From Stegostoma tigrinum (lineage: Eukaryota), in NCBI RefSeq assembly GCF_030684315.1, contig NC_081394.1, positions 1,612,001 to 1,676,000 on the forward strand: a DNA stretch of 64,000 nucleotides, given 5' to 3'. Of the stretch, positions 7,888-58,859 are shown piece by piece; position 1 is the first letter of the stretch, and each line of letters begins with the position of its first letter. The notes under the pieces were generated by a model, which had not been told where the DNA came from, searched no databases, and saw only the letters and a list, made by a program, of their open reading frames with translations. The position numbers and the translations under genes are program-made.

Positions 7888-8112
7888 CAGAGGGTCAGTG
7901 CTGAGGGAGTGCCGCACTGTTGGAGGGTCAGTGCTGAGGGAGTGCCGCACTGTTGGAGGGTCAGTGCTGAGGGAGCGGGCATTGTCAGAGGGTCAGTACT
8001 GAGGGGGAGCCGCACTGTCAGAGGTTCAGTGCTTAGGGAGTGCTGCACTGTTGGAGGGTCAGTACCGAGGGAGAGCCGTATTGTCAGAGGGTCAGTGCTG
8101 AGGGAGCACTGC
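7888..8112 (-). repeat. 32-bp minisatellite (reverse orientation)
   Basis: gagggtcagtgctgagggagtgccgcactgtt units. Confidence 0.9.
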
Positions 8113-15879: not shown

Positions 15880-16125
15880 AGCTTCAGTATCGATTGAGTG
15901 CCGCATTGTCGGAGGGTCAATGCTGAGGGAGTGCCACACTGTTGGAGAGTCAGTACCGAGTGAGTGCCACACTGTCCGAGGGTCAGCACTGAGCGAGGTG
16001 CTGCACTGTCAGAGGGTCAGTGCAGAGGTAGTGCTGCACTGTCGCAGGGTCAGTGCTGAGGGAGCGCCGCACTGTCGGAGGGTCAGTGCTGAGGGAGCGC
16101 CGCACTGTCGGAGGGAATGCTGAGC
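15880..16125 (-). repeat. 32-bp minisatellite
   Basis: Tandem units; paralog of 7888-8112. Confidence 0.9.
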
Positions 16126-17097: not shown

Positions 17098-17580
17098 TCA
17101 GCACTGATCCTGCACAGTGTGGCACTCCCTCAGCACTAACCCTGCGGCAGTGCAGCGCTCCCACAGCACTGAGTCTGCGACAGTGCGGCACTACCTCAGC
17201 ACTGACCCTCCAACAATGCGGCGTTCCCTCAGTGCTGATCCTCTGACAGTGCGGAACTCCTTCAGCACTGACCCTCTGACAATGCGGTGATTGCTCAGCA
17301 CTGACCCTGCAACAATGTGGTGCTCCCTCAGCACTGACCCTCCGACAGTGTGGCACTCCCTCAGCACTGACCCTCCGACAGTGCAGCGCTCCCTCAGCAC
17401 TGACCCTCCGACAGTGTGGCGCTCCCTCAGCAACGACCCTCTGACAGTATGACACTCCCTCAGCACTGACCCTCCAACAGTGCAGCGCTCCCTCAGAACT
17501 GACCCTCTGACAGTATGACACTCCTTCAGCACTGACCCTCCGACAGTGTGGCACCCCATCAGCACTGATGCTCTGACATA
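17098..17580 (+). repeat. 32-bp minisatellite (~15 copies)
   Basis: Tandem ctccctcagcactgaccctccgacagtgtggca units. Confidence 0.9.
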
Positions 17581-24250: not shown

Positions 24251-24678
24251 TGGTCCTTGCGGGAGGCACAGAAGGATGGGGAGTGGAAGATGTTTCGGGT
24301 GATGCAGCATTCCCTCAGTACTGACAGTTTGGTACCCCTCAGTACTGACCCTCCGACAGTGTGGCGCTCCCTCAGCACTGACCCTCCGACAGTGCAGCAT
24401 TCCCCCAGCAATGCACTGAAGAGTCAACATGATTAATTATGATGGATAATACCCATTGTGATGTTTAATCATATATGGGTGCATTTATGCATTTTTGCTG
24501 CTTTTTTTGAATTCATTTTCATTCTATCATTCACAATGAATCTTTACGGAGTCCTCTTTATAAAATGCATACTTCAGGGAAAGCAGGCTCAGAGCAGAAT
24601 TAGACCACGTCAGGATGATGTCCTCACCACTCTACAGTCCAACAGCCTTTCCACATAATAGGTCCCATTTTGTATTGT

Positions 24679-24820
24679 GTAGAGCTGGAGGGACACAGCA
24701 GGTCATGCAGCATCAGAGGAGAAAGAAAGTCGATGTTTCGGGTTTACATCGTTCATCAGGACTCTCACCGTGCTCAACATTGTATTGACTGTGACTCCAG
24801 CATCTGCAGTTCTTGCTATC
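24679..24820. mobile_element. PLE pLTR fold-back mini-insertion
   Basis: TSD tcccat(tt/ga)tgtattgt at 24663-24678 and 24821-24836. Confidence 0.65.
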
Positions 24821-30300: not shown

Positions 30301-32252
30301 GGAAGGAAGAAGGTAGCTTACATAAGGTGGAGGAAGCTAGGGTCAAGCTCAGCTCTAGAGGATTACAGGCAGGCGAGGAAGGAGCTCAAAAATGGTCTGA
30401 GGAGAGCCAGGAGGGGGCACGAGAAAGGCTTGGCAGAACGGATTAGGGAGAACACAAAGGCATTTTACACTTATGTGAGGAATAAGAGAATGGTCAAAGA
30501 AAGAGTAGGGCCGATCAGGGATAGCATAGGGAACTTGTGTGTGGAGTCTGAGGAGGTAGGGGAAGCCCTAAATGAGTTTTTTGCTTCTGTCTTTACGAAA
30601 GAAAAACTTTGTAGTGAATGAAACCTTTGAAGAGCAGGTGTGCATGCTGGAATGGATAGAGATAGAGGAAGCTGATGTGCTGAAAATTTTGTCAAACATT
30701 AAGATTGACAAGTCGCCAGGCCCGGACCAGATTTGTCCTCGGCTGCTTTGGGAAACGAGAAATGTAATTGCTTCGCCACTTGCGAAGATCTTTGCATCCT
30801 CGCTCTCCACTGGAGTTGTACCTGAGCACTGGAGAGAAGCAAATGTAATTCCTCTCTTCAAGAAAGGAAATAGGGAAATCCCCGGCAATTACAGACCAGT
30901 AAGTCTCACGTCTGTCATCTGCAAGGTGTTAGAAAGAATTCTGAGGGATAGGATTTATGACCATCTGGAAGAGCATGGCTTGATCAAATACAGTCAACAC
31001 GGCTTTGTGAGGGGCAGGTCATGCCTCACAAACCTTATCGAATTCTTTGAGGATATGACTAGAAAAGTTGATGAGGGTCGAGCTGTGGATGTGGTGTATA
31101 TGGACTTCAGCAAGGCATTTGATAAGGTTCCCCATGGTAGGCTCATTCAGAAGGTCAGGAGGAATGGGATACAGGGGAACATAGCTGTCTGGATACAGAA
31201 TTGGCTGGCCAACAGAAGACAGCGAGTGGTAGTAGAAGGAAAATATTCTGCCTGGAAGTCAGTGGTGAGTGGTGTTCCACAGGGCTCTGTCCTTGGGCCT
31301 GTACTGTTTGTCATTTTTATTAATGACTTGGATGAGGGGATTGAAGGATGGGTCAGCAAGTTTGCAGACGACACAAAGGTTGGAGGTGTCGTTGACATTA
31401 TAGAGGGCTGTTGTAGGCTGCAGCGGGACATTGACAGGATGCAGAGATGGGCTGAGAGGTGGCAGATGGAGTTCAACCTGGATAAATGCGAACTGATGCA
31501 TTTTAGAAGGTCGAATTTGAAAGCTGAGTACAGGATTAAGGATAGGATTCTTGGCAGTGTGGAGGAACAGAGGTATCTTGGTGTGCAGATACATATATCC
31601 CTTAAAATGGCCACCCAAGTGGACGGGGTTGTTCAGAAAGCATATGGTGTTTTGGCTTTCATTAGCAGAGGGGTTGAGTTTAAGAGTCGTGAGATCTTGT
31701 TGCAGCTCTATAAAACTTTGGTTAGACCGCACTTGGAATACTGCGTCCAGTTCCGGTTGCCCTATTATAAGAAAGATGTGGATGCTTTGGAGAGGGTTCA
31801 GAAGAGGTTTACCAGGATGCTGCCTGGACTGGAGGGCTTATCTTATGAAGAGAGGTTGACTGAGCTTGGACTTTTTTCATTGGAGAAAAGGAGGAAGAGA
31901 GGGGACCTAATTGAGGTATACAAGATAATGAGAGGCATAGATAGAGTTGATAGCCAGAGACTATTTCCCAGGGCAGAAATGGCTAACACGAGGGGCCATA
32001 GTTTTAAGCTGGTTGGAGGAAAGTATAGAGGGGATGTCAGAGGCGGGTTCTTTACACAGAGAGTTGTGAGAGCATGGAATGCGTTACCAGCAGCAGTTGT
32101 GGAAGCAAGGTCATTGGGGACATTTAAGAGACTACTGGACATGCATGTGGTCACAGAAATTTGAGGGTGCATACATGAGGATCAATGGTCGGCACAACAT
32201 TGTGGACTGAAGGGCCTGTTCTGTGCTGTACTGTTCTATGTTCTATGTTCTA
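30301..32252 (+). mobile_element. Young 5'-truncated CR1/L3 LINE (ORF2 30430-32164, frameshift near 30600)
   Basis: KSPGPD, NYRPVSLTS, QHGF, RT motifs, (TTCTATG)n tail. Same subfamily as 4299-5574, in the opposite orientation. Confidence 0.95.
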
Positions 32253-35199: not shown

Positions 35200-38100
35200 G
35201 TATCTATAGGTGAGAGGTTGGAAGAGCACAGCAGGTCTGACACCAGAGGAGCAGGAAAGTCAACATTTCAGGGCAAAATCCTTCATCAGGAGAAGGGGAG
35301 GGTAGTCCAGAAATAAATAGGAGGAGGGTGGAGCTGGCGGGGGGAGCGGGTGGAAAGGGTAGGAGAGATTCTGATAGGTGGATGCAGATAAGGGGTTATT
35401 GTGAGTGGTCTATGGAAAAGGTGAGGCGGATTGGTGAGTAGGAAGATGGACAGGCAAGGTCAGATCAGGAGGGAAAGGGCTGGAAATAGGATACGGCTGG
35501 GAGTGGAGAGATTTTGAAGCTGATGAAATCAATTATGAAGCCATTTTGGAAACAGGCCATTTGGCCCAATAATCTACACCAACCCCCTAAAGAGCATCCC
35601 ACCCAGACCCATCATCCTACCCTGTACTTTAACCCTGCATTTCCCATGGCTATTGTACCTAACCTACCCACTATGGGCAATTTAGCATGGTCAATCCATT
35701 TAACTCGTACATCTTTGGGCTGTGGGGGTAAACCAGAGCATCTCGTGGAAACCCACACAGGCACAGGGAGAATGTACAACCATCACACAGTTATCTAAGG
35801 CCGGAAATGGATTGAGGTCTCTAGTGCTGTGAGGCAGCAGCGCTGATCACTGAGTCACCGTGCCAGCGTTGTTCCTCCAGTTTGTGTTTGGCCTCACTCT
35901 GCCAGTGGAGGAGGACACATTGTCAGGGAAGTGTGACAGGGGAATTAAAATGGATGGCAACCAGAAGGTAGCGTTGGTTGATGTGTGCAAAGAACAGATG
36001 CTCCGCGAACCGGTCCCTGAGTCTGTATTTGGTCTCCCCGATATACAGGAGGCCACAATGGGAGCAATGGATGCAATAGAACGGGTTAGATGATATGCAG
36101 GTGAATCCCTGTTGGATCTGGAAGGATTGTTTGTGGTTTTGGTCGAGGTGACGGGGAGGTGTAGGGGCAGGTGTAACACCTTCTGCATTTGCAGGAAAAG
36201 GTGCCAACTGTAGTAGGGTTAGTGGGGAGTGTGGAGCGGATGAGGGAGTTACGGAGTGAGATGTCCCTGTGGAAAGCAGATAGGATGGGGAGGAAAATAT
36301 CTTTTTGGTGGTAGGGTTGGATTATAGGTGATGGAAATGTTGGTGGATGATGCATTGGTTCTGGAGTTTGGTGGGATGGTACGTGAGGACAAAAGGGACC
36401 CAATCCTTTATGTTGTTGGAGGGAGGGGGTTTGAGGGCAGAAGTGTGGAAAATGGAGGAGATGTAGTTGAGGGCATCCGTAATTACAGAGGAGGTGAAAC
36501 TGTGGTTCCTAAAGTAAGAGGATATCTTGGATGTCTTGGAGGACAACGCCTCATCCTGACAGCAGATGTGGTGGAGGTGGAGGAATTGGGAATATGGGAT
36601 CACATTTTAGCAGTGGAGGTGGGTGAGATGAGGTGTTGTCAAGCTAAGTATGAGAGTCAGTGGGTTTGTAATAGATGTCGGTGGTGAGTCAGTTTTCAGA
36701 GATGGAGACGTAGAAGAGATGAAAGAGGAGGGGGTGTCAGAATAGTCCCTGAGATTTTAAGGGCGGGGTAGAAGGTGTTGGCAAGTTGACGAACTGCTTG
36801 AGAACCTTGTGGGAACACAAGGCAGCACCAATGCAACATCAATACAGCAGAGAAAGAGGTGAAGGATGCTGTTGGTGTGGTTGCGGAAGAGAGACTTGTT
36901 CCACAAATCCTACGAAAAGGCGGACAATGCTCAGGCCCATGTGGGTACCCATAGCCACTCCTTTGGTTTGTCGCAAGTGGGAGGACCAAAGGAGAAATTG
37001 TTGAGAGTGAGGACCAGTTCAGCAAAGCGAATGTCAGTGAGTATGTCAGTGGAGGGGCCTGGTTGGGTCTACAGGAAAGGAGGAAGTGGCCCCTAACATA
37101 TGATGCTATCTGGGAAGTTCTGGAGTAGAATGCCTCAAGCTGGGAGAAGATGCGGTGGAAGAATTCGGACTATGGGGTAGCATTTTTGCAGGAGGGCAGG
37201 TGAGGGGAGGGTGTATACAGGTGTATGTCCATAGTAAGGATGAGGTATTGGAGGCTGGGGAACTGAAAATTTTAGAAAAGGTGGAGGACGTTGGTTGTAT
37301 CCCAAATGCAGGCAGGGAATTCCTGGACCTAAGGGGGAAAGAATGGAGTTGAGGTAGGAGGGAATGAGCTTGGTGGGGCAGGAGTAGGCAGATACAATGG
37401 ATCGACAGGGACATACAGGTTTATGGATTTTGAGTAGGAGATAGCAATGGGTGGTATGGGGTGGGGAACTATCAGGTTGGAGGCTGGGGAAGGGAGATCT
37501 CCTGAGGTAATGAGGTTGTTAATGGTCTGGAAGATAATGGCTTGGTGATCACAGGTGGGGTCAAGATCAAGGAGACAGTAGGAGGTGGTGTCAGAACCTG
37601 GCCTCAGTGATGTAGAGATCAGTGTACCATACTACCACTGTGCCACCTCCACCCCCTTTGTTGGCAGGTTTGATAGAGTGTTTGGAGTTGGAGTGAGGAG
37701 AGCAGAAGGCTGCACGTTCCAATGGGTTGAGGTTGGAGTAAGTGAGAGGGGAGGAGGGATTCAAGCAATTGATGTCACAAAGGGAATTTGAGATAAAGAG
37801 GTTGAGAGAAGGTAAGAAGCCAGGTGGGAATGTGAAGGAGGGTGGATTTTGTTGGAGGTGGGAGAAGAGGGTCATCAGAGGTTGGGTTAGATTTCTGCTT
37901 AAAGAAATGTGTTGAGGTGGCGGAAGGAACAATCGATGTGATGGCGTGTTTGGAATTCATTTATTTGTGGGGACAAGGGAATGAAGGAAAGCCCTTTGCT
38001 GAGGACTGATTGTTCAGCCTTAGTGAGGGAAAGGTCCAGGGAAGCTAGGAGCGGGGGTGGAGGCTTCATCCAGAGTGGGTGTGTGTACTAGAGTGGTTAC

Positions 38101-38995
38101 ATGGATGGAAGCAGAAGTAAGGCAATCGTCACTGATGTTGATGTTGACGGAAGTGGCAGTCACATTGTCATCAACGTCAGTGGAAGTGGTGGTCATGTGA
38201 TCTGCAGGTGTGGCTGGAGCACCCATGTGGTCAATGGCGTCGGGCTAACCCCAGACAAGCTAGGAGAGCAGGTTACGATGCTGAATGGTTGAGGAGGTTT
38301 GTGTCTGGAGCTAAGTATGGGACAGTTTGGCATACTTATGGACTTTGACATCTGAAAGGGTGGAGAAAAGGTGTTAGTTGAGGGTTTGGATCCTTCTGAG
38401 AACAGAGAACAGTAGATGTCCGGTGCAGGTCTGGGAGAGAGGGCCCCCTGAGCTAGAGCAAGGCTGACTGCTGGAGAGAAGGCATTGATGCATGGCAGGG
38501 AACTTGGAGCTGAGAATCCATTGGGATAATAATTTCTGGAGGCACTGGAGGTACTGAAAATAACAATTGTCATGGTGGGTCCAAATTGTGAACGTCTGAA
38601 AGTTATTTGGAGTGCATGGGGGATGAGCCGGCTACGTTGACAGGCACTGAGAAAGGAGGCATAGCTGTAGAGTCGAGATTGCTTCAGAATGTGGCTGAAG
38701 AGCTTCATGGCAGAGGAGACAACCGGGGTGGCAGTGGGGGGGGGAAGGGAAGCATGTCAGGTGGTTTGCAGTGGGAGAAAGACTCACTGAGGTCCCTTCA
38801 GAGGGAGGAGTAAAACTTCTTTGAGGGTGGGCATACTTCACACAGACTTTACAGTGCTGGTTTTCAATGGCTTGGAGACAATAAGGACTGCAGATGCTGG
38901 AAGCCAGAGTATATAAGTGTGAGGCTGGAAAAGCACATCGTCAGACAGTATCTGAGAAGCAGGGAAGTCAACGTTTCAAGCCAAAACCTTCTTCA
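35200..38995 (-). mobile_element. Long degenerate PLE with pLTR-like ends, interrupted by HE1 at ~35545-35865
   Basis: CIHCSHCGLLYIGETKYRLRDRFAEH, IKPANKGG.VVVW.TDLY, degenerate HHR-like motifs at ~35260 and ~38970. Confidence 0.8.
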
Positions 38996-39395
38996 GCATG
39001 GTGAATAATGAGAGGACACCAGAAATAAATAGAGGGAGAAGTGTGGGATTGGGTGACCGGTGGGAGAGATTCTGAAGTGGTTGCAGGTTGGGGGATATTC
39101 TGATTGGTTTGTGGGAAGGGTGGACATGGAATTAGGGTGGACGTGGAGGGATTTTGAAGCTGGTGAAGTCAATAATAAGGCCATTTGACTTTAATCTTCC
39201 AAGGTGAAATATCAGGTGTTGTTGGAAGTTAAGACCGCTTATCATCTCATAGAGAGTCAAAGTGGTCAGTGAGGACATTGTCTAAAAGTAGTTCTGATCT
39301 CTCAAGACCTGTTGGACAAAAGGTGGGGTCTCATTAACTCCTTTCTCTTTCAGAGATTGAGCAGGAGATGCTGATGAAATATCTGGGGACTGGGA

Positions 39396-41913: not shown

Positions 41914-42078
41914 TTGACATTTTGGGTCATGATCTTCTTCAGACCCTTTTCTGAAGAAGGATCCCGAACCAAAAAGTCAAACTTGGCTGCTCCTCTCATG
42001 CTGCTTGGCCTGCTGTGTTCATCCATCTTCACACTGCGTTATCTCAGATTCTCCGGCATCAGCAGTTCCTACTATCTA
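41914..42078. mobile_element. PLE pLTR fold-back mini-insertion, 14-bp TSD
   Basis: agtattttccatgt at 41900-41913 and 42079-42092. Confidence 0.8.
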
Positions 42079-43787: not shown

Positions 43788-44060
43788 AGCGCTGACCCTC
43801 TGACAGTGCGGCCCTCCCTCAGAGCTGACACTCCGACAGTGCGGCCCTCCCTCAGAGCTGATACTCCAACAGTGCGACGCTCCCCCAGCACTGACCCTCC
43901 AACAGTGCGGCGCCCCCTCAGCGCTGACCCTCCGACAGTGTCCCCTCCCTCATTAGTGACCCTCTGACATTGCAACATGGCCTCAGTATTGACACATTAA
44001 CAGTGCAGCAATTGTTCAGTGCTGACCCTCTGGCAGTGCGGCACTCCCTCAATACTCACC
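43788..44060 (+). repeat. 32-bp minisatellite
   Basis: Tandem units visible. Confidence 0.85.
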
Positions 44061-44290: not shown

Positions 44291-44507
44291 AACTAGGTGT
44301 AGAGCTGGATGAACACAGCAGGCCAAGCAGCATCATAGGAGCAGGAAAGTTGAGGTTTCGGGCCTAGACCCTTCTTCAGAAAATGAAGGGTCTAGGCCCA
44401 AAATGTCAGCTTTCCTGCTCTCATGATGCTGCTTGGCCTGCTGTGTTCATCCAGCTCCACACCTTATTAATGTGGATTGTCCAGCATCTGCTGTTCCTAT
44501 TATATCT
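44291..44507. mobile_element. PLE pLTR fold-back insertion with two head-to-head degenerate HHRs
   Basis: Centre tttcgggcctagacccttc-ttcagaaaat-gaagggtctaggcccaaaa; TSD 44276-44290 vs 44508-44522 (12/15 match). Confidence 0.75.
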
Positions 44508-45414: not shown

Positions 45415-46200
45415 GTGCATCACTCACTTCATACTGACCCTCTAACATTTCAGCATGCCCTCATAACAAATGCTTTGACAGTGCAGCATTCCATCAGCAC
45501 TGACCATCCAATAGTGTTGACACTCCCTCAATACCGACCCACTGACAGTGCAGCATTCCATCAGGACTGATCCTCCAAAAGTGCGGCACTCCCTCAGCAC
45601 TGAGACTCCGACAGTGCAACACTCCATCAATGCTGATTCTCCAGCAGTGCGGCATTCCCTCAGTGCAGACTTTCCAACAGTGCACCACTCCCTCAGCACT
45701 CACCCTCTGACACTGCGGTATTGCCTCAGTACTGACCAGTGCGGCACTCACCCTCCGAAATTGCAGCAATCCATCAGCACTCACCCCCCGACAACACGAC
45801 ACTCCATCAGGACTGACCATCCAAAAGTGCTGCACTCCCCCAGTACTGACCCTCTGATGGTGCGGCATTTCCTCTGACTGTATGGCACTCCCTCAGCGCT
45901 GATCCTCCAACAATGTGGTGCTCCCTCAGCACTGATCCTCCAACAGTGCGGCACTCCCTCAGCACTGACTGTCCGACAGTGCGGCACCCCCTCAGCACTG
46001 ACCCTCCGACAGTGCAGCACTCCCTCAGCACTGACCTTCCGACAGGGTGGCACTCACTCCGTTCTGACATGCTGAGAGTGCAGCACTGACCTTCCGACAG
46101 TGCAGCACTCGCTCAGCACTGACCCACTAACAGTGTAGTGCTCCCTCAGCACTGACCTTCCAACAGGGTGACCCTCGCTCAGCAATGACAATCTGGCACT
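45415..46200 (+). repeat. 32-bp minisatellite filling most of the intron
   Basis: More than 20 degenerate units. Confidence 0.9.
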
Positions 46201-46334: not shown

Positions 46335-46616
46335 ACGAACCACGGAATTTTTCAATTACCTCGCCTGCTGTGATTAAAGATTCATCGATCAATATAATTG
46401 AGGGGAATGCTGCAGTGATAATCTGCTGTGCCATGAGCTTCCCAGAGTCTAACCTGGCGTGGAAACATCTTAATGTCACAATGAACAGAACATATTCTAA
46501 CAATGAACTGTGGTTGGTTCTCCCTCATGTTACATACAGGAAGACTGGAGACTATCAGTGTATAGCAGAGAATAAACATGGAGCAGAGGAGGGCTACATA
46601 AACTTCAATGTGCAAA
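46335..46616 (+). CDS. Siglec-like C2/I-set domain 3 exon
   Basis: Acceptor cttattttcag. Translates (Y)EPRNFSIT...EGNAAVIICCAMSFPESNLAW...GDYQCIAENKHG...FNVQ; donor A|gtgaat. Confidence 0.85.
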
Positions 46617-47013
46617 GTGAATGTACATAGACTTCATTAGCAAGTTTTGAGAAGATTTGTAGCTCAGGTTGAGGTCCTGGATGTGAGTTTGCTCGCTGAG
46701 CTGGAAGGTTAGTTTTCAAACGTTTCGTCACTTTTTTTTTATTTGAAAAAAATATACTTTATTCGTAAGATGTACAAAAAATAAAACATATTTATACACC
46801 TACCCAGTCATGCAAGCCGCTCCGGGTTACCCAGGGGGTACATACACCAACTAAAGGAAAAAAAACAAAGAAGAAAAAAAAAACAAAGCAAAGAAAATAC
46901 CCCGGCAGTCGTCACCCCGCACAGTCCCAGTTGGCCCCATGACCAGTTGGGGAAGGTGCCAGCTGGGCCCAGTTACCAGACAGGGCCCTTTTTACTATTC
47001 TGGACGAGGGGTT

Positions 47014-50000
47014 TCATACGGTGGTCTTTCCCCACTGCGCCTTGGCGGCGGCTGCCCCAAGCTTTAGCGCGTCCCTCAGCAAGGTCCTGGAGCTTGGAGT
47101 GCGTCAGTCTGCAACACTCGGTCAGGGTCAGTTCTTTCAGCTGGCAGACCAGCAAGTTGCGGGCAGACCAAAGAGCGTCTTTCACCGCATTGATGGTCCT
47201 CCAGGCGCAGTTGATGTTGGTCTCAGTGTGCGTCTCGGGAAACAGCCCGTAGAGCACGGAGTCCCACGTCACGGAGCTGCTCAGGACGAACCTCGACAAA
47301 TACCACTGCATCCCCCTCCAGACCTCCTGCGCATAGGCACACTCCAGAAGGAGGTGATCGAAAGTCTCGTCCCCCCCGCAGCTGCCTCGAGGGCAGCGTG
47401 CGGTGGCGCAGAGATTCTGGGCATGCAGAAAGGATCTCACTGGCAGAGCCCCTCTCACTGCCAGCCAAGCAATGTCCTTGTGCTTGTTTGAAAGTTCTGG
47501 CGATGAGGCATTCTGCCAAACGACTTTGGCAGTCTGCGTGGGGAACCACACGACGGGATCCACCCTCTCGTTTTCCCAAAGGGTCTCAAAAATACTACGT
47601 GCTGACCACTGCCTGACGGCCTTGTGGTCAAAGGTGTTTCCCTTCAAAAATTTCTCCACGAAGGACAGGTGGTACGGGACGGTCCAACTACTCGGAGCAT
47701 TCCGCGGCAACGAGGCCAGGCCCATCCTTCGCAACACCGGGGACAGGTAGAACCTCAGTAAGTAGTGACACTTGGTGTTTGCGTACTGAGGATCTACGCA
47801 CAGCTTGATGCAGCCGCACACAAAGGTAGCCGTCAGGGCGAGGGTGGCGTTCGGTACACCCTTCCCTCATTTTCCAGGTCTTTGTACATGGTGTCCCTGC
47901 GGACCCGGTCCATCCTCGACCCCCAAATGAAGTGGAAGATGGCCCGGGTGACGGCAGCGGCGCAGGTCCAGGGAATAGGACAGGCCTGCGCCACATACAA
48001 CAGTACCGAAAGGCCCTCGCACCTGACAACCAGATATTTACCTGCGATGGAGAGAGAGACCGGAGCGTCCACCTGCCCAGCTTCTGCTTCAATTTGGTGA
48101 TACGCTCCTCTCAAGTCTTAGTGCACGCCCCAGCTCCACCGAACCAAACACCCAGCACCTTCAGGTAGTCTGTCCTGACGGTGAAGGGGATGAAGGAGCG
48201 GTCGTCCCAGTTCCCGAAGAACATGGCCTCGCTCTTACTCCTACTGACTTTGGCACCCGAGGCCGGTTCAAACTGGCCGCAGATGTCCAACAGCCTGCTC
48301 ACCGACCGACGATCGGTGCAGAAGACGGCCACATCGTCCATGTACAGGGAGGTCTTGACCTGGAGGCCTCCGCTGCCTGGGATAGTCACGCCCTTCAGGC
48401 TCACGTCCTTCCTGATGGATGCGACGAAGGGCTCCACACAGCACACGAACAAGGCAGGAGAGAGCGGGCAGCCCTGCCTGACTCCAGATCTGACGGGAAA
48501 ACTGTCCGATTCCCACCCGTTGATCGAGACTGCGTTAACGATGTTGGCATAGAGCAGCCGGATCCAATTGCGGATGCCCTCCCCGAACCCCAATTTGGAG
48601 AGGACGTCCCTCATGTAAGCATGAGAGACCCTGTTGAAGGCCTTCTCTTGGTCCAGGCTGACGAGGCAGGTGTCCACCCGCCTGACCTGTACGTAGGTGA
48701 TCGTATCCCTGATGAGCGCGAGGCTCTCAGCGATCTTCCTGCCCGGCACAGCACAGGTTTGGTCAGGGTGAATCACCGACTCCAGGACAGACCTGACCCG
48801 GTTGGCTATGACCTTGGCCAGGATTTTGTAGTCCACGTTCAATAGTGAAATGAGACGCCAATTCTTAATTTCTTCCCTCTCCCCCTTCCTCTTGTAAATG
48901 AGGGTGATGATGCCCTTCCTCATGGACTTGTACATTTTCCCTGCCCAAGGCGCACTATCGTACACCTCCAGCAGGTCCTGGCCGACCAGTTCCCACAGAG
49001 CAGAATACAGCTCGACTGGTAAGCCGTCGCTTCCGGGAGTCTTATTTCTCTCCAAGGACTTGAGGGCTCTGGTCAGCTCGTCCAGGGATATCGGCCAGTC
49101 CAGCCACTCCCTCGTGCCGTCATCTAAGACCTCCATGATAGACGACAGGAACGACTCGGAGGCCGTGCTGTCCGTGGGCTTCGTGTCGTACAGTCCAGCA
49201 TAGAAGGATCTGCTTATCCTCAAAATGTCGGGCCAAGACGACGTCACCGAGCCGTCGTCCTCCTTCAACCGGCTAAGCCCAGAGCTCTCTTTGTGCACCT
49301 TCTGAAAGAAGAAACGTGAGCACATCTCATCCTGCACCAGCGAGTGGACCCTGGACCAGAAGATTATCCTGGAGGCCTCCGCGGCGAAGAGCGAGGCTTG
49401 CTGGCCCCTCACCTCACGGAGGTCCTCCGTGACATCGACCCCCATCAACTGCAGAAGGAGCATGTTCTGCACCCTTTTCTGGAGTCACAACAGCTTTCCC
49501 CGCCTCTCTCTCGCCTTCCGAACACCCTTGAGGACAAAGAACCTCTTGATGTTCTCCTTCACCGTCTCCCACCAGTCGCCCAGAGACTCAAAGAGGGGTT
49601 TCACAGTTCTCCAAATGGCGTACTCCCTCTTAAGCTCCTCGACGTTCTCTGGGGTCAACAGAGTCGTGTTGAGCTTCCACGTCCCCTTGCCGGCCGGCTG
49701 ATCGTCCTGTAAGTGACAGTCGGCCAGCAGGAGGCAGTGGTCAGAGAAGAACATCGGCTCGACGCCGGTGGACCTGACCGAGAACGCCCGTGACACAAAC
49801 AGGAAGTCTATCCTTGAGCGAATAGACTCATCTGGCCGTGACCAGGTGTAACTCCGCTGCGCTCTGTCTGCAGGGGTGCTGAAGACATCGAGCGGCTTGG
49901 CGTCCTTCACCGTGCCCATCAGGAATCTGGACGTGACGTCCAGTTGACTCCCCCCACCCGCTGTCCCCGCGCCGGATCTTCCATCTGCATTGATGGTGAA

Positions 50001-50432
50001 GTTGAAGTCTCCGCCTAGGATGACCGGCCTGGACGTAGCCAGCAGGGGTGGAAGCCGCTGCAGGACGGCCAACCGCTCACTCCGTACCACTGGGGCGTAC
50101 ACGTTGATCAGCCTCAGGGGAGCGTTCCTGTAGGTGACGTCAGCCACTAGGAGGCGCCCCCCCACCACCTCCTGAACTTGAGAGATGGTGAAGTTGTGCC
50201 CCCGCAGCAGAATAGCCAGGCCCGAGGAGCGACAGTCGTTACCCCCCGACCAGATTGAAGGCCCACAGGTCCAGGCGCCGGACCATTTCCCGTACCTGCC
50301 GAGGTGCGGTATCCCGCACTCCTGCAGAAACAGGAGGTCCGCCTTGATGGTGGTCAGGTAGGCCAACGTGGACACACATCTCGCGGTTGGCTTGACCCTG
50401 CGCACATTAATGCTCGCAACTCGTACCCCCAT
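47014..50432 (-). pseudogene. Tx1 ORF2 (APE endonuclease - reverse transcriptase - zf-RVT), interrupted
   Basis: SINVR, LQEC, INVYAP, GGDFN, SRIDF, SDH; [29 protein letters not shown]; CPRGSCG...HLLLEC. Stops near 49485 and 48111, and frameshifts near 48060 and 47860. Confidence 0.9.
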
Positions 50433-51874
50433 TGTGGGCAGTGACCGCAGTACCCTCCCCAAGTCCAAGGTCCAGCCCCTCCATCTGTCCCTTCATGCCC
50501 ATTGCCCGGGCTAACTGCTGGACGCTCTCTGGGCTCTGGAAACCGACCGTGCTGCCTTCTGGGTGGCATCCCCCCGTCGGGGGTAAGGAGTGCGGAGAGT
50601 CCGGCTCTGGGTCAGGCTGGGGATGCATTGTTTCCTCCTTCCCGCTTGGAAGTTCCGGGGGGGCCTCCAGTGCCACAGCGGCACGTGACTGGGTGTCGGA
50701 GGGAGCCTCAGGACGCCTCCCATCACCTGGAAGCGTGGTGCTGCTTTCCTTGTCCCTTGAGATCTTTAACTTCTGCTTCGGGCGGGCCCTCTCCGAATCC
50801 CCCTCGTCAGAGGAGCTCTTATAGCCCCCTTGTAGCTGCCTCTTCCTGCCTGATGGTTGCGGTTCCTGGGCCCGCCGACGCACCTTCCTCCTCGTTTTCC
50901 AGACCGTCGTCCACTCCCCTGGGTCGCCTGTCGCCGCCTCCATCGACTCCGGGTTGTCGGGGGGGGACCGGAGCCTGCAGAGGCGCTTTGCTGGCCTCGG
51001 GACCGTCCTGCAGGCCTGGGCCCTCCTGCACGACCTGGCCCTCCTGCACATTAGTAGAGTCCTTGCTGGGCCCTGGTGCCTTCCTCTCCTCCGGGGGGGC
51101 TGGCCCCGCATTGCTCTTTCCGGCGACCTGGGCGTAGGAGGTCCCCCACTGCGGGCATGCCCTATAGAGGTGGCCCGCTTCCCCGCAAAGGTTGCAGCTT
51201 CTCTCTCGTGGGCAATCCTTTGCAAGGTGTCCCTCCTCCCTGCAGTTCCTGCAGATGGTGGCTTTGCAGTCGGCCGCCACGTGACCTGACCTACCACAGG
51301 CATGGCAGACTTTAGGTTGCCCTGTGTAGGTCAGGTAGCCCTTGCTCCCGCCGATCGCGAAGCTGGACGGTGGGTGTACGACGTTCCCGTCCGCGCCCAT
51401 CCTCAGCGTCACCTTGACCTGCCTCTTACTGGTCCAGATGCCAAAGGGGTCCATGATATCAGTTAGGCCCCCTTCCACCTTCACGTACCTTCCAAGGAAG
51501 GTCAGGACATCAACTGCTGGCACATGTGGGTTGTACATGTGTACAGTCACCATACGGCTCCTCTGCGCTGGCATCACAAACAGCGGGACAGCGGTCAATA
51601 CAGAGAGGGGGCCCTCACCTCCTTTCTCCTTGAAAACCTCCAGGAAGCGCTCGCAAAGCTTGGCACTCCGGAAGGTCACATCGTAAAAACCTCCTCCGGG
51701 GAAATCCTGCAGGCAGTAAATGTCCGCAGCAGCAAACCCACAACAGTCCAACAGGACCCTCTTCACGAAGAAGGTGCGGTCCACAGGTGCACCTTCATCC
51801 ACCTTCTTTACGGAAACACGGATGGTGTTCCGGACCCCCTGACCTGGGGCACGAGCACTCGCCACAGCCATCAT
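50407..51874 (-). pseudogene. Tx1 ORF1 (gag-like, ZCCHC3-like, three CCHC zinc knuckles), frameshift near 50965
   Basis: CHACGRSGHVAADC, CRNCREEGHLAKDC, CNLCGEAGHLYRAC; overlaps the ORF2 start. Confidence 0.85.
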
Positions 51875-52068
51875 TGCAGGTTGGCTGCTCCCCTGAACCA
51901 GCGTTAGGCCGAAGCCAGCATTAAGATCCACTGGTTGCAAGGGTGTACAGCCAACCCGATGTCCTCCTTTCACCTCCAAGACGGCACTCTCCTCCTCTCG
52001 GTCCACAAGAGAGTGGTTCTTTATTGTGTTCGAGATGTAAGCTGGTTCACTGAGCTGTAAGGTTTGTT

Positions 52069-52110
52069 CCCAGACGTTTCGTCACCATTCTAGGTAACGT
52101 CAACAGTGAG
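52069..52110 (-). ncRNA. Type-I minimal hammerhead motif spanning the PLE/Tx1 5' junction (core mutated CUGAUGA>CUGUUGA in this copy)
   Basis: CUCA-CUGUUGA-C-GUUACC-UAGAAU-GGUGAC-GAAA-CG-UC|UGGG; stem I CUCA/UGGG, stem II GUUACC/GGUGAC, palindromic helix III. Confidence 0.7.
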
Positions 52111-52709
52111 CCTCCGACGAAGCGCTGGTGTTATGTCCCGCTTTCTATTTATCTGGTTAGGTTTCCTTGGGTGGGTGATGTCATTTCCTGCGTTGGTGAT
52201 GTCATTTCCTGTTCTTTTTCTCAGGGGATGGTAGATTGGCTCCAAATCAATGTGTGTGTTGATGGAGTTCCAGTTGCAATGCCATGCTTCTAGGAATTCT
52301 CGTGCGTGTCTCTGTTTGGCTTGTCCTAGGATGGATGTGTTGTCTCAATCAAAGTGGTGTCCTTCCTCATCTGTATGTAAGGATACGAGTGATAGTGGGT
52401 CATGTCGTTTTGTGGCTGGTTGATGTTCATGTATCCTGGTCGCTAGCTTTCTGCCAGTTTGTCCAATGTAGTGTTTGTCACAGTTCTTGCAAGGTATTTT
52501 ATAGATGATGTTTGTTTTATTTGTTGTCTGTATAGGGTCTTTTAAGTTCATTAGCTGCTGTTTTAGTGTGTTAGTGGGTTTGTGGGCCACCCTGATGCCA
52601 AGAGGTCCGAGTAGTCTGGCAGTCATTTCGGAAATGTCTTTGATGTAGGGGAGAGTGGTTATGGTTTCTGAGCCTGTTTTGTCTATTGTTTGTGTTTATT
52701 GCTGAGGAA
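52071..52709 (-). mobile_element. PLE 3' body (GIY-YIG endonuclease and pLTR start)
   Basis: TLPYIKDISEMTARLL...NIIYKIPCKNCDKHYIGQTGRKLATRIHEH. Confidence 0.9.
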
Positions 52710-55597
52710 CCGCAACCATCAGGTGGGAAGAGGCAGCTACAGGGGGGCTATAAGAGCTCCTCTGACGAGGGAGATTCGGAGAGGGCCCGCCCAAAGCAGA
52801 AGCTAAAGATCTCAAGGGAGAAGGAAAGCAGCACCCGGCTTCCAGGTGACAGGAGGCGTCCTGAGGGTCCCTCCGACACCCTGGAGGGCCCCCTGGAACT
52901 TTCAGGCAGGAAGGAGGAAACAGCGCGTCCCCAGCCTGACCCAGAGTCGGACTCTCCTGCCTCCGTACCCCCGACGGGGGGATGCCACCCAGAAGGCAGC
53001 ACAGATGGTTTCCTGAGCCCGGAGAGTGTCCAGCAGTTAGCCCGGGCATTGGGCATGGAGGGGCTGGGCCTTGGACTTGGGGAGGGTACTGCGGTCACTG
53101 CCCACAATGGGGGTACGAGTTGCGAGCATTAATGTGCGCAGCGTCAAGTCCCCCACATGATGTGTATCCACGTTGGCCTACCTGACCACCATCAAGGCGG
53201 ACCTCCTGTTTCTGCAGGAGTGCGGGATACCGCACCTCGGCAGGTACGGGAAATGGTCCGGCGCCTGGACCTGTGGGCCTTCGATCTGGTCGGGGGGTAA
53301 CGACTGTCGCTCCTCGGGCCTGGCTATTCTGCTGCGGAGGCGCAACTTCACCATCTCTCAAGTTCAGGAGGTGGTGGGGGGGCGCCTCCTAGTGGCTGAC
53401 ATCACCTACAGGAATGCTCCCCTGAGGCTGATCAACGTGTACGCCCCAGCGGTACGGAGTGAGCGGTTGGCCGTCCTGCAGCGGCTTCCACCCCTGCTGG
53501 CTACGTCCAGGCCGGTCATCCTAGGCGGAGACTTCAACTGCATCATCGATGCAGATGGAAGATCCGGCGTGGGGACAGCGGGTGGGGGGAGTCAACTGGA
53601 CGTCACGTCCAGATTCCTGATGGGCACGGTGAAGGACGCCAAGCTGCTCGACGCCTACGTACAGGACAGGCGGGTGGACACCTGCCTCGTCAGCCTGGAC
53701 CAAGAGAAGGCCTTCGACAGGGTCTCTCATGCTTACATGAGGGACGTCCTCTCCAAATTGGGGTTCGGGCAGGGCATCCGCAATTGGATCCGGCTGCTCT
53801 ACACCAACATCATTCGTGCAGTCTCGGGAGGGAATCGGACAGTTTTCCTGTTAGATCTGGAGTCAGGCAGGGCTGCCCGCTCTCTCCTGCCTTGTTCGTG
53901 TGCTGTGTGGAGCCCTTTGCCGCATCCATCAGGAAGGACGTGAGCCTGAAGGGCGTGACTATCCCAGGCAGCAGAGGCCTTCAGGTCAAGACCTCCCTGT
54001 ACATGGACGACGACGCCGTCTTCTGCACCGATCGTCAGTCGGTGAGTCGGCTGTTGGACATCTGCGGCCAGTTTGAACTGGCCTCGGGTGCCAAAGTCAA
54101 TAGGGGTAAGAGCGAGGCCATGTTCTTCGGGAACTGGGACGACCGCTCCTTCATCCCCTTCACCGTCAGGACAGACTACCTGAAGGTGCAGGGTGTTTGG
54201 TTTGGTGGAGCTGGGGCATGCACTAAGACTTGAGAGGAGCGTATCACCAAACTGAAGCAGAAGCTGGGCAGGTGGACGCTCCGGTCCCTCTCCATCGCGG
54301 GTAAGAACCTGGTTGTCAGGTGCGAGGGGCTTTCGGTACTGTTGTATGTTGCGCAGGCCTGGCCTATTCCCTGGACCTGCGCCGCTGCGGTCACCTGGGC
54401 TATCTTCCACTTCATTTGGGGGTTGAGGATGGACCGGGTCCGCGGGGACACCATGTACAAAGACCTGGCAAATGGGGGAAAGGGCATACCGAACGCCACC
54501 CTCGCCCTGATGGCTACCTTTGTGTGCGGCTGCATCAAGCTGTGCGTAGATTCTCAGTCCGCAAACACCAAGTGTCACTACTTACTGAGGTTCTACCTGT
54601 CCCCGGTGTTGCGAAGGATGGGCCTGGCCTCATTGCCGCGGAACGCTCCGAGTAGTTGGACCGTTCCGTACCACCTGTCCTTCGTGGAGAAATTTTTGAA
54701 AGGAAACACCTTTGAGCAGTGGTCAGCACGTAGTGTCCTCGAGACCCTTCGGGAAAAGGAGGGGGTGGATCCCATCGTGTGGTTCCCCATGCAGACTGCC
54801 AAAGTCATTTGGCAGAATGCCTCATCGCCAGAACTTTCAAACAAGCACAAGGACATTGCTTGGCTGGCAGTGAGAGGGGCTCTGCCAGTGAGATCCTTTA
54901 TGCATGCCCGGAATCTCTGCGCCACCGCACGCTGCCCTCGAGGTGGCTGCGGGGGGGACGAGACTGTCGATCACCTCCTTCTGGAGTGTGCCTATGCGCA
55001 GGAGGTCTGGAGGGGGATGCGGTGGTATTTGTCGAGGTTCGTCCCGAGCAGCTCCGTGATGCGGGACTCCGTGCTCTACGGGCTGTTTCCCGGGACGCAC
55101 ACTGAGACCAACATCAACTGCGCCTGGAGGACCATCAATGCGGTGAAAGACGCTCTTTGGTGTGCCCACAACTTGCTGGTCTGCCAGCTGAGAGAACTGA
55201 CCCCGACCGAGTGTTGCAGACTGGCGCACTCCAAGGTCCAGGACTACGTGCTGTGGGACGCGCTAAAGCTTGGGGCAGCCGCTGCCAAGGCGCGATGGGG
55301 AAAGACCACGGTATGAAACCCCTTGTCCAGAATAGTAAAAAGGGCCCTGTCTGGTAACTGGGCCCAGCTGGCGCCTTCCCCAACTGGCCATGGGGCCAAC
55401 TGGGACTGTGCGGGGTGACGACTGCCAGGGTATTTCCTTTGTTTCGTTTTTTTTCTTCTTTGTTTGTTTTTTTGCCTTTAGTTGGTGTACGTATCCCCTG
55501 GGTAACCCGGAGCGGCTTGCATGACTGGGTAGGTGTATAAATATGTTTTATTTTTTGTACATCTTATGAATAAAGTATATTTTTTCAAATAAAAAAA
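52705..55597 (+). mobile_element. 5'-truncated, internally deleted second Tx1 copy
   Basis: Starts in the ORF1 tail. Endonuclease is joined to RT at ~53652 (about 1.2 kb missing). 3' UTR and poly(A) at 55591-55597 mirror the left copy. Confidence 0.9.
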
Positions 55598-56150
55598 GTG
55601 ACGAAACGTCTGAAAACTAACCTTCCAGCTCAGCGAGCAAACACATGCACAGACTTCATTGTGTCCATAACTATGTCAACGTTGATAACTATGAGAGTCT
55701 GTTGGATTTATAAAGGTATTTTGCATCGACTGTGTTAGTAACTTTCGTGTGCAGTTGTGTGTGACTTAAGAGACACTGGCAGTGACACTGACACTGACAA
55801 CGTGGCACATGGGAACAAAGACAGACGGAAATACACAGAATGAGGCATACACAAACACACAGATGCAAAGGAAACACACACACACCCACAGACACAGTCA
55901 CCCACACACACAAATACACACAGAACACAGAACCACAAATATAATAAACATAGGCACACAAATGGACGAGCATACACGCACACACAGATTGCCTTCACTC
56001 TCAGAACCTTGGACATATTCACAGCTTTGTGCGCAATGTGTTCCTGTTCCAGTCCAACTCACCACATTGCTCCGAAGGTTTGAAGTTGCCTAATAAAGCT
56101 TTCCTAATGACCAGAGGGAGTCTTTCATTGTCTTATTTTTCCTGGTACAG

Positions 56151-56241: not shown

Positions 56242-56849
56242 GTAAGTGCTAGGGGTTTGTTTGCAGTTTTTGAACACACTAAATTCAAACATTTCACCTC
56301 AGAGTTTCGTAGCATTCTTCGCAACTTCACGATGTGCCAACAGACTTTGCAACGAGCTCAGGCAGGACACTCAGCACCCACAGACACCAGTGTGATGGCA
56401 ACTGTGCAGGTCAACTATTTTGAGTCATAAGGCTATAGACTTGCTTGCTGAGCCAGTGTGTTTGATCGCAGACGTTTGGTCACCCTACCACGTATCATCA
56501 TCAGTGTGCCTTCGGTGAAGCTTGGTGTTCTGTCCCGCTTTTATTTATATGCCTCAGTTTGCTGGGGTGTTTGGCATCACTTCCAGTTTGATTTCTCAGT
56601 GGTTTGTATATTGGGTCAAGTTCAATGTGCTTGTTAACGGAGTTCTAGTTGAAATGCCAGAATTACAGGAATTCCCTGGTGTGTCTCTGTTCAGCTTGTG
56701 CAATTATGGATGTATTGTCCAGTCGAATTCCTGTCCTTCTTTGCTCATTTGTGTTGAGTCCAGTAAGAATTCACCGTGGCTCTTGATGGCTATTTGGTGT
56801 TCGTGTATCTTTATTGCCAGTTTTCTTCCAAGTTGGCCTATGTAATGCA

Positions 56850-58080
56850 GATAGAACATAGAACATAGAACAGTGCAGTACAGTACTGGCTCTTCAGCCC
56901 ACAATGTTGTACCGAACTTTTCCCCTGAACCTAAGGTCTATCTAACCTCCACCCCTACCTTACACTATCATCCATATGCCTGTCTAATAGCTGCTTAAAT
57001 GTCCCAAATGAGGCCAACTCCACTACCCTCTCTGGCAACGCATTCCACGCTCCTATCACTCTCTGAGTAAAGAACCTACCTCTGACATCTCCCCTATATC
57101 TACCTCCACTCACTTTGAATCTATGCCCCCTCGTATTAGCTACCTCCACTCTAGGAAAATGTCTCTGGCTATCCACTCTGTCTAAACCTCAGAACATTCA
57201 GTACACCTCCATTAAGTCACCTCTCATCTTTCATCATCCAAAAGAGAAAAGCCCTAGCTCTCTCAACCTTTCCTTGTAAGATCTACCCTCCATTCCAGGC
57301 AACATCCTGGTAAATCTCCTCTGCACCTTTTCTAACGTTTCCACATCTTTCCTGTAATGAGGCGACCAGAACTGGACACGATACTCCCGATGTGGACAAA
57401 CAAGGCTTTTGTATAGCTGGAACATAACTTCATAGCTCTTGAACTCAATCCCTCTATTAATGTAAGCTAACACACCATACGCCTTCTGGACAACTCCATA
57501 CACCTGGGTGGCAGCTTTCAGGGAACTGTGGGCATGAACTCCAAGATCTCCACACTGCCAAGAATCTTTCCGTTAACCCTGTATGCTGCTTTCAAGTTTG
57601 TCCTTCCAAAATGAATCACCTCATACTTTTCAGGGTTAAACTCCATCTGCCACTTCTTTGCCCAGTTCTGCATCCTATCAATGTCCCTTGGTAACCTGGA
57701 ACAGCCATCTGCACTATCCACAACTCGACCCATCTTCATATCGTCCATGAACTTACTAATCTGCCTTTCCACATCCAAATCATTTACAACAATCACAAAT
57801 ATAAGAAGACCCAGAACACCATTCGTAACTGAGCACTACGTGGAATAATTTCCGTCCACTACCACTTCTAAGGGTCAGCCAATTCTGAATCCAGTCTACC
57901 ATATTTCCTCCCATCCCACACTTCCTTACTTTCTGCATGAACCTGCCATGGGGAACTTTATCAAACGACTTACTTAAATCCATGTATATCACATCCACTG
58001 CTCAATCTTCATCTACTTGTTTGGTCACCTCTTCAAAGAATTCAGTTAGGTTTGTGAGGCATGGTCTACCCCTCACAAAG
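56850..58080 (-). mobile_element. 5'-truncated CR1 LINE
   Basis: (GAACATA)n tail; YMDLSKSFDKVPHGR, WQMEFNPEK. Confidence 0.9.
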
Positions 58081-58514
58081 GGGTATTTATGAGATACTTA
58101 AGGCCTTATACAAAATTACTCCAGCAACCACACCAACATTCATGCATCAGGACATTACTCAAATAGGCCACAGCCCACTGCAGCAATCCGAATTGGACAA
58201 ACCAGAACAGGAGCACACTTACTGAGTTTTTAAAAGTAATAGATACCAAAAAAAGCACAATCTGCCATTAGCTGCAAAAGATCACAGCAAGAAGACACAA
58301 TACAACCAGACACCCTACCGTACATCAGGGATATATCAGAGATGACCACAAGACTACTCGGTGTCAGGGTAACTGGAACTCCATTAACAAACATATTGAA
58401 CTGGACCTGATATACAAATCACTGAGGAACAGAACTGGAAGTGATGCCAACCAGCCAGCGAACCGAGGCATGTAAATAACAAGCAGGACAGAACATCAAC
58501 GCTTCACCGGAGGC

Positions 58515-58554
58515 GCACTGACGATGTTACCTGGCAGGGTGACGAAACATCTGC
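58515..58554 (+). ncRNA. Uninterrupted hammerhead motif in a PLE pLTR (empty counterpart of the Tx1 target)
   Basis: GCA-CUGACGA-U-GUUACC-UGGCAG-GGUGAC-GAAA-CA-UC-UGC. Confidence 0.7.
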
Positions 58555-58859
58555 AATCAAACCCACCGGCTCAATGAGCAAGTCTACAACCTTATCCACG
58601 ACCCAAGCTACAAATCTTCTCAAAAACTTGTTTTGAATCATGTTGAGATCTTGAGGGATTGATCTTGATCTCAGAATGGTGGGGAAATTCATATCCTGCT
58701 CCCCTTCCAACAGCGACTGTGGCAGCCTTCACACTCAACCGAGGGGGCACGCGGGGCCTTGGTTTAAGGTTTCATCAGAGAGTGCAGAACTCTCACAGCA
58801 CTGGCACTGGAAGTATCGGACTGAAATGTCAAGTGCTTTGGACATCCTTTTAAATAAAA

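Follow-up and report, generated by a model that had tools for sequence, protein, structure and literature searches.

An L1/Tx1-type LINE in the minimal hammerhead motif of a Penelope-like element of the shark Stegostoma tigrinum

The window analysed here is a stretch of 64,000 nucleotides of Stegostoma tigrinum DNA (assembly GCF_030684315.1, contig NC_081394.1, positions 1,612,001 to 1,676,000 of the forward strand); all coordinates below are positions within it. It carries a long interspersed nuclear element (LINE) of the L1/Tx1 type, inserted in the minimal hammerhead ribozyme motif of a Penelope-like element (PLE). We consider it reasonably probable that this LINE belongs to a high-copy shark family which integrates at one specific bond in the hammerhead of one PLE family.

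The full-length LINE (copy 1) occupies 46732–52070 on the minus strand and is 5.3 kb long, as recognised by its domain content and the layout of its open reading frames (ORFs). In the direction of the element it comprises a 5' untranslated region (UTR; 51875–52070), an intact ORF1 (50819–51874), an ORF2 broken into at least four frames or pieces (46973 to ~50800), a 3' UTR with AATAAA (46741–46972), and a poly(A) tail (46732–46740). A domain scan found two ZCCHC3-type RNA-binding domains and CCHC knuckles in ORF1, and Exo_endo_phos (AP-type endonuclease), RVT_1, and zf-RVT in the ORF2 pieces. An APE endonuclease and a reverse transcriptase (RT) in ORF2, together with an ORF1 bearing RNA-binding domains and CCHC knuckles, constitute the L1/Tx1 architecture. 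The closest proteins in an RT search were unnamed RTs from salamander, teleosts, and elasmobranchs, with no named reference among the matches; a protein-atlas look-up likewise yielded no clade name. Relatives of ORF1 recovered by homolog search were exclusively elasmobranch (Heterodontus, Chiloscyllium, Mobula, and Heptranchias), and no Penelope-derived N-terminal extension was present in the gene models of these elasmobranch homologs.

Copy 1 is bounded on both sides by a 15-nt repeat. The 5' copy, GTGACGAAACGTCTG (52071–52085, minus strand), stands directly before the LINE 5' end at 52070, and the 3' copy, GTGACGAAACGTTTG (46717–46731, minus strand), stands directly after the poly(A). The 3' copy reads UUG where the target reads C17-UG, i.e., C17 is changed to U. 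The same hammerhead 3' half, GTGACGAAACGTCTG, is found once more at 55598–55612 on the plus strand, where it adjoins a second poly(A) (55591–55597) belonging to another LINE copy. The 15-mer contains five of the six nucleotides of the helix II 3' strand, GAAA, CG, U16.1, C17, and the first two nucleotides after the cut; it is near-invariant even between PLE subfamilies that differ by 20–25% elsewhere. The repeat thus placed behaves like a target-site duplication of a LINE inserted inside the Penelope minimal hammerhead. A previous sequence-only reading of the window had reported that both poly(A) tails and the full-length 5' end abut the same 15-mer, and this was borne out. Its two poly(A) junctions stood as sequence; as two separate hits of the LINE they did not, both having descended from one event.

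Upstream of the LINE, motif reading and folding place a rebuilt minimal hammerhead across the 5' junction (52069–52110, minus strand). Its helix I would pair CUCA (52110–52107) with UGGG (52072–52069), the UGGG strand coming from the leader of the LINE. The core (52106–52100) reads CUGUUGA, in which A6 is replaced by U at 52103; it is followed by one unpaired C, the helix II 5' strand GUUACC, and a 6-nt loop. Helix II joins 52098–52093 to 52086–52081 by the pairs GC, UA, UG, AU, CG, and CG. GAAA lies at 52080–52077, and the run GAAA-CG-UC (52080–52073) has the required G12-A13-A14, A15.1-U16.1, and H17. Cleavage is predicted between 52073 and 52072, at a scissile bond 2 nt away from where exact sequence gives way to diverged sequence. 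The helix I pairing UGGG:CUCA, the position of the cut, and the mutated core had all been proposed beforehand and were confirmed in the sequence.

Minimal PLE hammerheads are described as having a long helix II of 6–8 bp with an unpaired 5' nucleotide, a helix I of 4–5 bp, and no real helix III (PMC4209133). The junction conforms to this descriptor, with a helix II of 6 bp preceded by an unpaired 5' nucleotide, a helix I of 4 bp, and an ACGU palindrome as the minimal helix III. The required core, C3-U4-G5-A6-N7-G8-A9, is absent from the junction copy but present in the family, where uninterrupted copies read CTGATGA. Uninterrupted hammerheads of homologous elements, one of which the sequence-only reading had placed at 58515–58554, were found at 58518–58551 (plus strand; CUGACGA ... 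GAAA CA UC) and, in decayed form, at 56471–56504 (minus strand; CUGAUGA ... CAAA), both in diverged Penelope subfamilies. No Rfam hammerhead match was obtained at the gathering score in the whole window, nor at E-values up to 10 around the junction. The uninterrupted PLE hammerheads, searched at the gathering threshold only, also scored below it. The Rfam models seem not to cover the minimal PLE form. Exact scans of a metagenome collection for both junctions returned no match.

The empty target and the abundance of the family were read from contigs of public runs matched at 85% likeness to 46600–52300. Two runs of the same organism label gave 85,192 and 53,910 contigs on this interval; the LINE/PLE family was also present under a second organism label, and parts of the LINE body under a third. 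Two contigs join 46716 to 52071, skipping 5354 nt and retaining one copy of the 15-mer; they represent the exact empty site. At 46731, 48 and 53 contigs (four in the second organism) run into an uninterrupted hammerhead of the same family with the core CTGATGA, and the contig break at this position is the exact 3' junction of the LINE. Summed depth over the poly(A) junction was ~120,000–142,000 vs. ~160,000–540,000 over the 3' UTR. Contig depth is a rough and poor measure of copy number; at this resolution the junction depth fits many LINE 3' ends joined to a hammerhead half. The LINE family is very abundant and autonomous in build.

The interrupted element is represented by a 5'-truncated PLE piece (52086–52704, minus strand) that holds the C-terminal, GIY-YIG endonuclease part of the ORF, and the stop codon of this ORF falls within the hammerhead. 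The GIY-YIG motif in the piece was detected with a Pfam E-value of 0.002, below the cut-off. Among 8713 homologs of the piece, seven long ones were scanned: RVT_1 was present in all seven and GIY-YIG (below the Pfam cut-off) in four, C-terminal to the RT in three of those four. Only the endonuclease end of the PLE is present in the window, and the order of RT and GIY-YIG was read from the homologs. The element with the hammerhead is a PLE with endonuclease (Penelope/Poseidon type), having an RT followed by a C-terminal GIY-YIG.

The 3' end of this PLE is visible in two tails, one in each of two inverted arms. In the left arm, the Penelope tail occupies 46639–46716 (minus strand) and consists of 40 nt to 46677 and an optional 38-nt extension to 46639. 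Homology of this tail to the Penelope copy at 58539–58630 runs on to 46641. At 46677/46678, hundreds of contigs cease matching and enter unlike, AT-rich sequence. We read 46677, 40 nt past the 15-mer, as the usual 3' terminus of the PLE. The tail of the right arm (55613–55650, plus strand) ends between 55642 and 55650 and is without the optional extension. In the Anolis PLE, a tail of 30–40 nt lies between two reverse-transcription start sites, cleavage occurs at ATT, and both target strands are cleaved and extended (PMC11167929). If 46677 and 46639 are two PLE 3' termini, they would match the two start sites and the optional tail of Anolis, and this signature would extend to a shark element.

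The LINE itself begins with a Penelope-derived leader (52028–52070, minus strand), 37–43 nt long and ~72–76% like 46716–46674. Aligned without gaps and in register to the Penelope sequence that follows the 15-mer (46716 downward), it agrees at 28/37, 29/40, and 31/43 positions, after which the likeness falls to background. The best of 200,000 shuffles scored 27, against the observed 31/45, and the next best register anywhere in the LINE gave 23/45. The claim that the leader is a diverged Penelope copy with 28 of 37 positions identical was confirmed. Divergence of the leader from the PLE tail is ~24–28%, while the flanks of the insertion differ mutually and from the family by a few percent. Because it is far more diverged than the flanks, the leader is part of the LINE and not the drifted half of a long duplication. 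A 55-nt target duplication with later drift was rejected, as the first 15 nt and the other flanks differ by at most 7% and the next 40 nt by ~27%. Some states of the leader are common to other PLE subfamilies in the window; the leader is therefore old, or derived from another subfamily.

The homology of the leader ends 37–43 nt after the 15-mer, at the inferred PLE terminus at +40. Judged by these limits, the counterpart of the leader in the PLE would begin at the ribozyme cut site and stop where a PLE insertion lacking the tail has its 3' end, and the simplest origin of the leader would be an RNA that began at the hammerhead cut and ran through the PLE end into the LINE. The boundaries argue for ribozyme cutting of a PLE–LINE co-transcript at least once, which would not imply that the family uses this mode at present.

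The interval 46639–55650 has an inverted structure, with the Penelope tails outward and the truncated 5' ends abutting at 52704/52705. The right arm contains LINE copy 2 (52705–55597, plus strand), which is 5'-truncated at the equivalent of copy 1 position 50867 and is without the equivalent of 48698–49887. No hammerhead 5' half precedes it at 52705; it abuts the truncated minus-strand PLE end at 52704. Copy 2 is 93.6% and 91.6% identical to copy 1, and the divergence between the two arms is 5–6%. Copy 1 departs from nearly all family contigs at 19 LINE positions, and copy 2 has the same rare state at 5 of them. The shared transversion at 46939 is found in ~0.03% of contig depth, roughly two copies' worth. 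The outer ends carry a direct repeat, the exact 10-mer AGACTTCATT, at 46629–46638 (plus strand; extending with mismatches to 46621) and at 55651–55660 (plus strand). It ends in ATT, the cleavage motif reported for an Anolis PLE (PMC11167929). An inverted, 5'-truncated copy beside the main copy is the usual arrangement of PLE insertions, in which a tail of 30–40 nt is optional (PMC8557442). The interval 46639–55650 is one PLE-made fold-back insertion, with the LINE carried as a passenger in both arms.

Because the arms form one fold-back and share family-rare variants, the two LINE copies are not independent. Two independent LINE insertions in the window were rejected on account of the fold-back structure and the shared rare variants. 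Twin priming of the L1 type was rejected as the origin of the inversion, since each arm has its own poly(A) followed by a Penelope tail. An inverted duplication or other rearrangement at the DNA level, following a single LINE insertion and involving no PLE reverse transcription, appears unlikely. The shared rare variants and the arm divergence of ~5–6% would fit any duplication; however, both arms end at or near PLE-type termini, with the optional tail on one of them only, the short flanking direct repeat ends in ATT, and the inner ends are 5' truncations, all of which follows the published PLE pattern (PMC8557442, PMC11167929).

From the fold-back as a PLE-made insertion it follows that a read-through RNA existed, composed of the PLE ORF end, the hammerhead, the whole LINE, the hammerhead 3' half, and the tail. 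This RNA was therefore uncut at the rebuilt ribozyme, and the LINE poly(A) signal was bypassed; the window thus documents one LINE insertion event, not two. Of the suggestion that the LINE parasitises PLE transcription, passage of transcription from the PLE through the LINE gained indirect support, in that the composite was copied by the PLE. PLE-driven transcription may also be the normal mode of expression of the LINE.

Separately from these points, copy 2 was found to be missing ~1.19 kb internally (53651–53654 vs. 48698–49887 of copy 1), and many different internal-deletion joints occur across the LINE family in the public-run contigs.

The mechanism that we favour is integration by a site-specific LINE aimed at the hammerhead. 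The LINE endonuclease would nick the bottom strand within GTCAC/CATTC, at a point 13 nt 5' of the scissile bond; the top strand would be nicked at a distance of 15 nt from there, beyond the scissile bond by 2 nt, and the 15-nt duplication would result. The LINE RNA would begin with the 37–43-nt leader, an old or foreign copy of the PLE post-cut segment, and each insertion would restore a complete hammerhead and tail, in register, upstream of the LINE. The hammerhead core was probably chosen as the most conserved stretch of a very abundant repeat. Finally, a PLE read-through transcript (ORF end, whole LINE, and downstream tail) would have been reverse-transcribed from both target strands, yielding 46639–55650.

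The specificity of the endonuclease is inferred from several lines taken together. The nick context GTCAC/CATTC is not T-rich, unlike non-specific L1-type sites. The leader belongs to the LINE and exceeds the flanks in divergence; the LINE lineage has therefore encountered a PLE on at least two occasions, the later one exactly in register. Site-specificity is favoured because of this non-T-rich nick, the abundance and autonomous build of the family, the repeated encounter with the PLE, and the precedent of Tx1 LINEs that target other transposable elements (PMC4494074).

A simpler account, in which one chance LINE insertion in a PLE master copy was spread by the PLE as cargo, with junctions identical by descent, seems to us very unlikely. 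The window locus is itself a PLE-made copy of the composite, and carriage of foreign sequence and of introns is known from PLEs (PMC8557442). Nevertheless, the leader sits within the 15-nt duplication and has diverged from the PLE much further than the flanks have, and the nick site does not resemble those of non-specific L1-type elements. ORF1 is unbroken, and the family seems autonomous, polyadenylated, and present in very many copies; spreading it as cargo would require the PLE to copy an additional 5.3 kb of RNA on thousands of occasions.

Several points weigh against site-specific integration by a Tx1 LINE at the hammerhead. A single independent LINE insertion is readable in the window, and genome-wide specificity rests on contig depths, with their poor bearing on copy number. 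Since the PLE has demonstrably mobilised the composite, some or many of the copies that share identical junctions could go back to a few original insertions and owe their spread to the PLE. The position at which the leader starts is resolved only to the interval from −13 to +3 of the cut site, because the 15-mer is the conserved catalytic core and is kept across subfamilies. The Tx1-clade label is likewise provisional, being based on domain architecture and not on a tree.

Given a LINE specific for this site, it is possible that the LINE has also taken over the ribozyme, a reading to which we attach tentative credence. The LINE would be transcribed from the PLE with no promoter of its own in use, and the rebuilt hammerhead would make the 5' end of the LINE RNA (UG GGAAC...), in the manner of R2. 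The leader starts within resolution of the scissile bond and ends at the inferred usual PLE 3' terminus, and so covers the post-cut segment. The fold-back implies PLE-to-LINE read-through RNA, the UG common to the cut RNA and the target would be a natural microhomology for a precise 5' junction, and a precedent exists in R2, where some ribozymes cut upstream of the junction, within host sequence (PMC3774820). However, the core is dead in the window copy (A6 to U), and the RNA that built the locus was uncut at the rebuilt site.

Folding bears on the takeover of the ribozyme in both directions. The pre-insertion join and the 58518 copy have hammerhead-like minimum-free-energy folds, with a helix I of 3 bp and a helix II of 6–7 bp. 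With the leader in place at the occupied junction, helix I has 4 bp: two A-to-G changes, at +3 and +4, extend its pairing with the family CUCA from 3 to 4 bp, which speaks for use of the ribozyme. Against it, the junction prefers another fold: the minimum-free-energy structure (−25.0 kcal/mol) pairs UCACUG with the leader CAGUGA (52108–52103 with 52050–52045, minus strand), vs. −20.2 kcal/mol for the enforced hammerhead. In this rival pairing UCACUG covers the helix I 5' strand and C3-U4-G5 of the core. The native PLE tail has CAGCGA in place of the leader CAGUGA and pairs more weakly with UCACUG. The leader also weakens GGAGG:CUUCC, the distal helix I pairing of the native PLE, and this too counts against the takeover. 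According to these predictions, a ribozyme can be drawn at the junction, but the leader is not obviously tuned for it in the window copy.

Published work on PLE ribozymes is also unfavourable to the takeover. In vitro, cleavage by minimal PLE hammerheads is poor, and dimers are thought to be required (PMC4209133). For an Anolis PLE, the ribozyme depended on protein, none of the RNA-seq reads terminated at the cut site, and the substrate was RNA that had not been cut (PMC11167929). Taken together, self-cleavage of the ribozyme as the source of the LINE 5' end may be called plausible, with no great confidence. A fuller scheme of split-ribozyme complementation is rather doubtful; here the LINE would cut PLE DNA within the hammerhead, its leader would supply the missing helix I strand, the PLE ribozyme would free the LINE RNA, and the PLE would copy the LINE as a passenger.

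Equally, a site-specific LINE may make no use of the ribozyme, and this too is a possibility that we hold only tentatively. The leader would then be a relic of one long target duplication or of a 5' transduction, or it would be kept to regenerate the DNA target, as in head-to-tail arrays, or to regenerate the PLE 3' cis-elements (the hammerhead and the reverse-transcription start site), whereby the host element would stay mobile. The leader restores the target in register and covers the stretch up to 46677, where the first start site of PLE reverse transcription is placed by inference, and conserved multicopy sequences are classic targets of site-specific LINEs (PMC4494074, PMC4640811). On the other hand, a leader diverged by 24–28% from the present target would be a poor mimic if exact recognition were needed.

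Other repeats were noted in the window. The two uninterrupted PLE hammerheads form an inverted pair (56427–56650 and 58371–58595, 84%). Between them sits one copy of an unrelated ~1.2-kb repeat that occurs three times with ~72% identity (56851–58080, 4308–5558, and 31003–32150, the last on the minus strand). A second hammerhead-like motif was found at least six times, at 21137–21164, 24732–24759, 35262–35289, 38970–38996, and 44352–44379 on the minus strand and at 41951–41978 on the plus strand. It reads CTGA[A/T]GA, then GAAA beyond a short helix II rich in GC, and closes ~2 nt later with a T and one more nucleotide; similar downstream sequence (tttcctgctcct ... gatgctgc) is present in five of the six. 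This pattern suggests a further repeat family equipped with a minimal hammerhead; no Rfam match was obtained at its sites. Satellite-like tandem repeats with a period of ~33 nt are common to 45480–46190, 17130–17570, 15890–16115, 7890–8100, 1580–1740, 24340–24410, and 43825–43950, and the fold-back has one such tract immediately to its left.

LINEs of the Tx1 group that target transposable elements are already known, as are LINEs that free their RNA by their own ribozyme. The former include Tx1L in Tx1D of Xenopus, the crocodilian Tx1-Mar in Mariner-N4_AMi, and Tx1-8_Crp and Tx1-4_AMi in LTR retrotransposons (PMC4494074). The shark element resembles these in being an APE-type L1/Tx1 LINE found at one defined site in another transposable element, with a target duplication of fixed length. 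It differs from them in that its target is a Penelope-like retroelement, within the ribozyme core, and in that a target-derived leader restores the motif. The ribozyme–LINE parallels are the HDV-like ribozyme at the 5' end of R2 (PMC3774820, PMC3414825), the HDV-like ribozyme of L1Tc (PMC3185411), and the twister variants of Schistosoma LINEs (PMC8501958). As in R2, a site-specific LINE would be co-transcribed with its host unit and would have a self-cleaving ribozyme at or across the 5' junction, predicted in the shark from sequence only; in many R2s the cut also lies in host sequence upstream of the junction. In R2, L1Tc, and Schistosoma the ribozymes are encoded by the LINE, whereas in the shark the core would be that of the host transposon, the LINE giving one strand of helix I, and the ribozyme class is the hammerhead.

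As for the PLE, its hammerhead agrees with the minimal hammerheads described from these elements (PMC4209133) in a helix II of 6–7 bp with an unpaired 5' nucleotide, a helix I of 3–5 bp, the ACGU palindrome, and the position at the ORF end or in the pLTR. The locus agrees with described PLE insertions (PMC8557442, PMC11167929) in the optional 30–40-nt tail, the adjacent inverted 5'-truncated copy, and the ATT motif. Unlike in known PLEs, the shark hammerhead is split by a 5.3-kb LINE, and the LINE was copied within the PLE's own RNA. A further parallel is offered by SINEU and other retroposons, in which target or flank sequence was turned into a heritable 5' end via upstream transcription, with mobilisation of the Tx1 type (PMC4494074). 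In contrast to SINEU, the piece captured in the shark is bounded by the ribozyme cut site and the inferred PLE 3' terminus, and it sits on an autonomous LINE. Full-text literature searches on Tx1 with Penelope, hammerhead, or shark found no description of the arrangement.

If true, a LINE aimed at the ribozyme of another retroelement, and equipped with the piece that rebuilds it, would unite the two known ideas of transposon-targeting and ribozyme-bearing LINEs. The unexplained hammerhead of Penelope elements would then gain a readable in vivo phenotype, namely LINE 5' ends at the cut site. At this locus, Penelope reverse-transcribed a foreign LINE of 5.3 kb on both strands of one target. This bears on the choice and copying of templates by PLEs and on how nested transposons spread each other.

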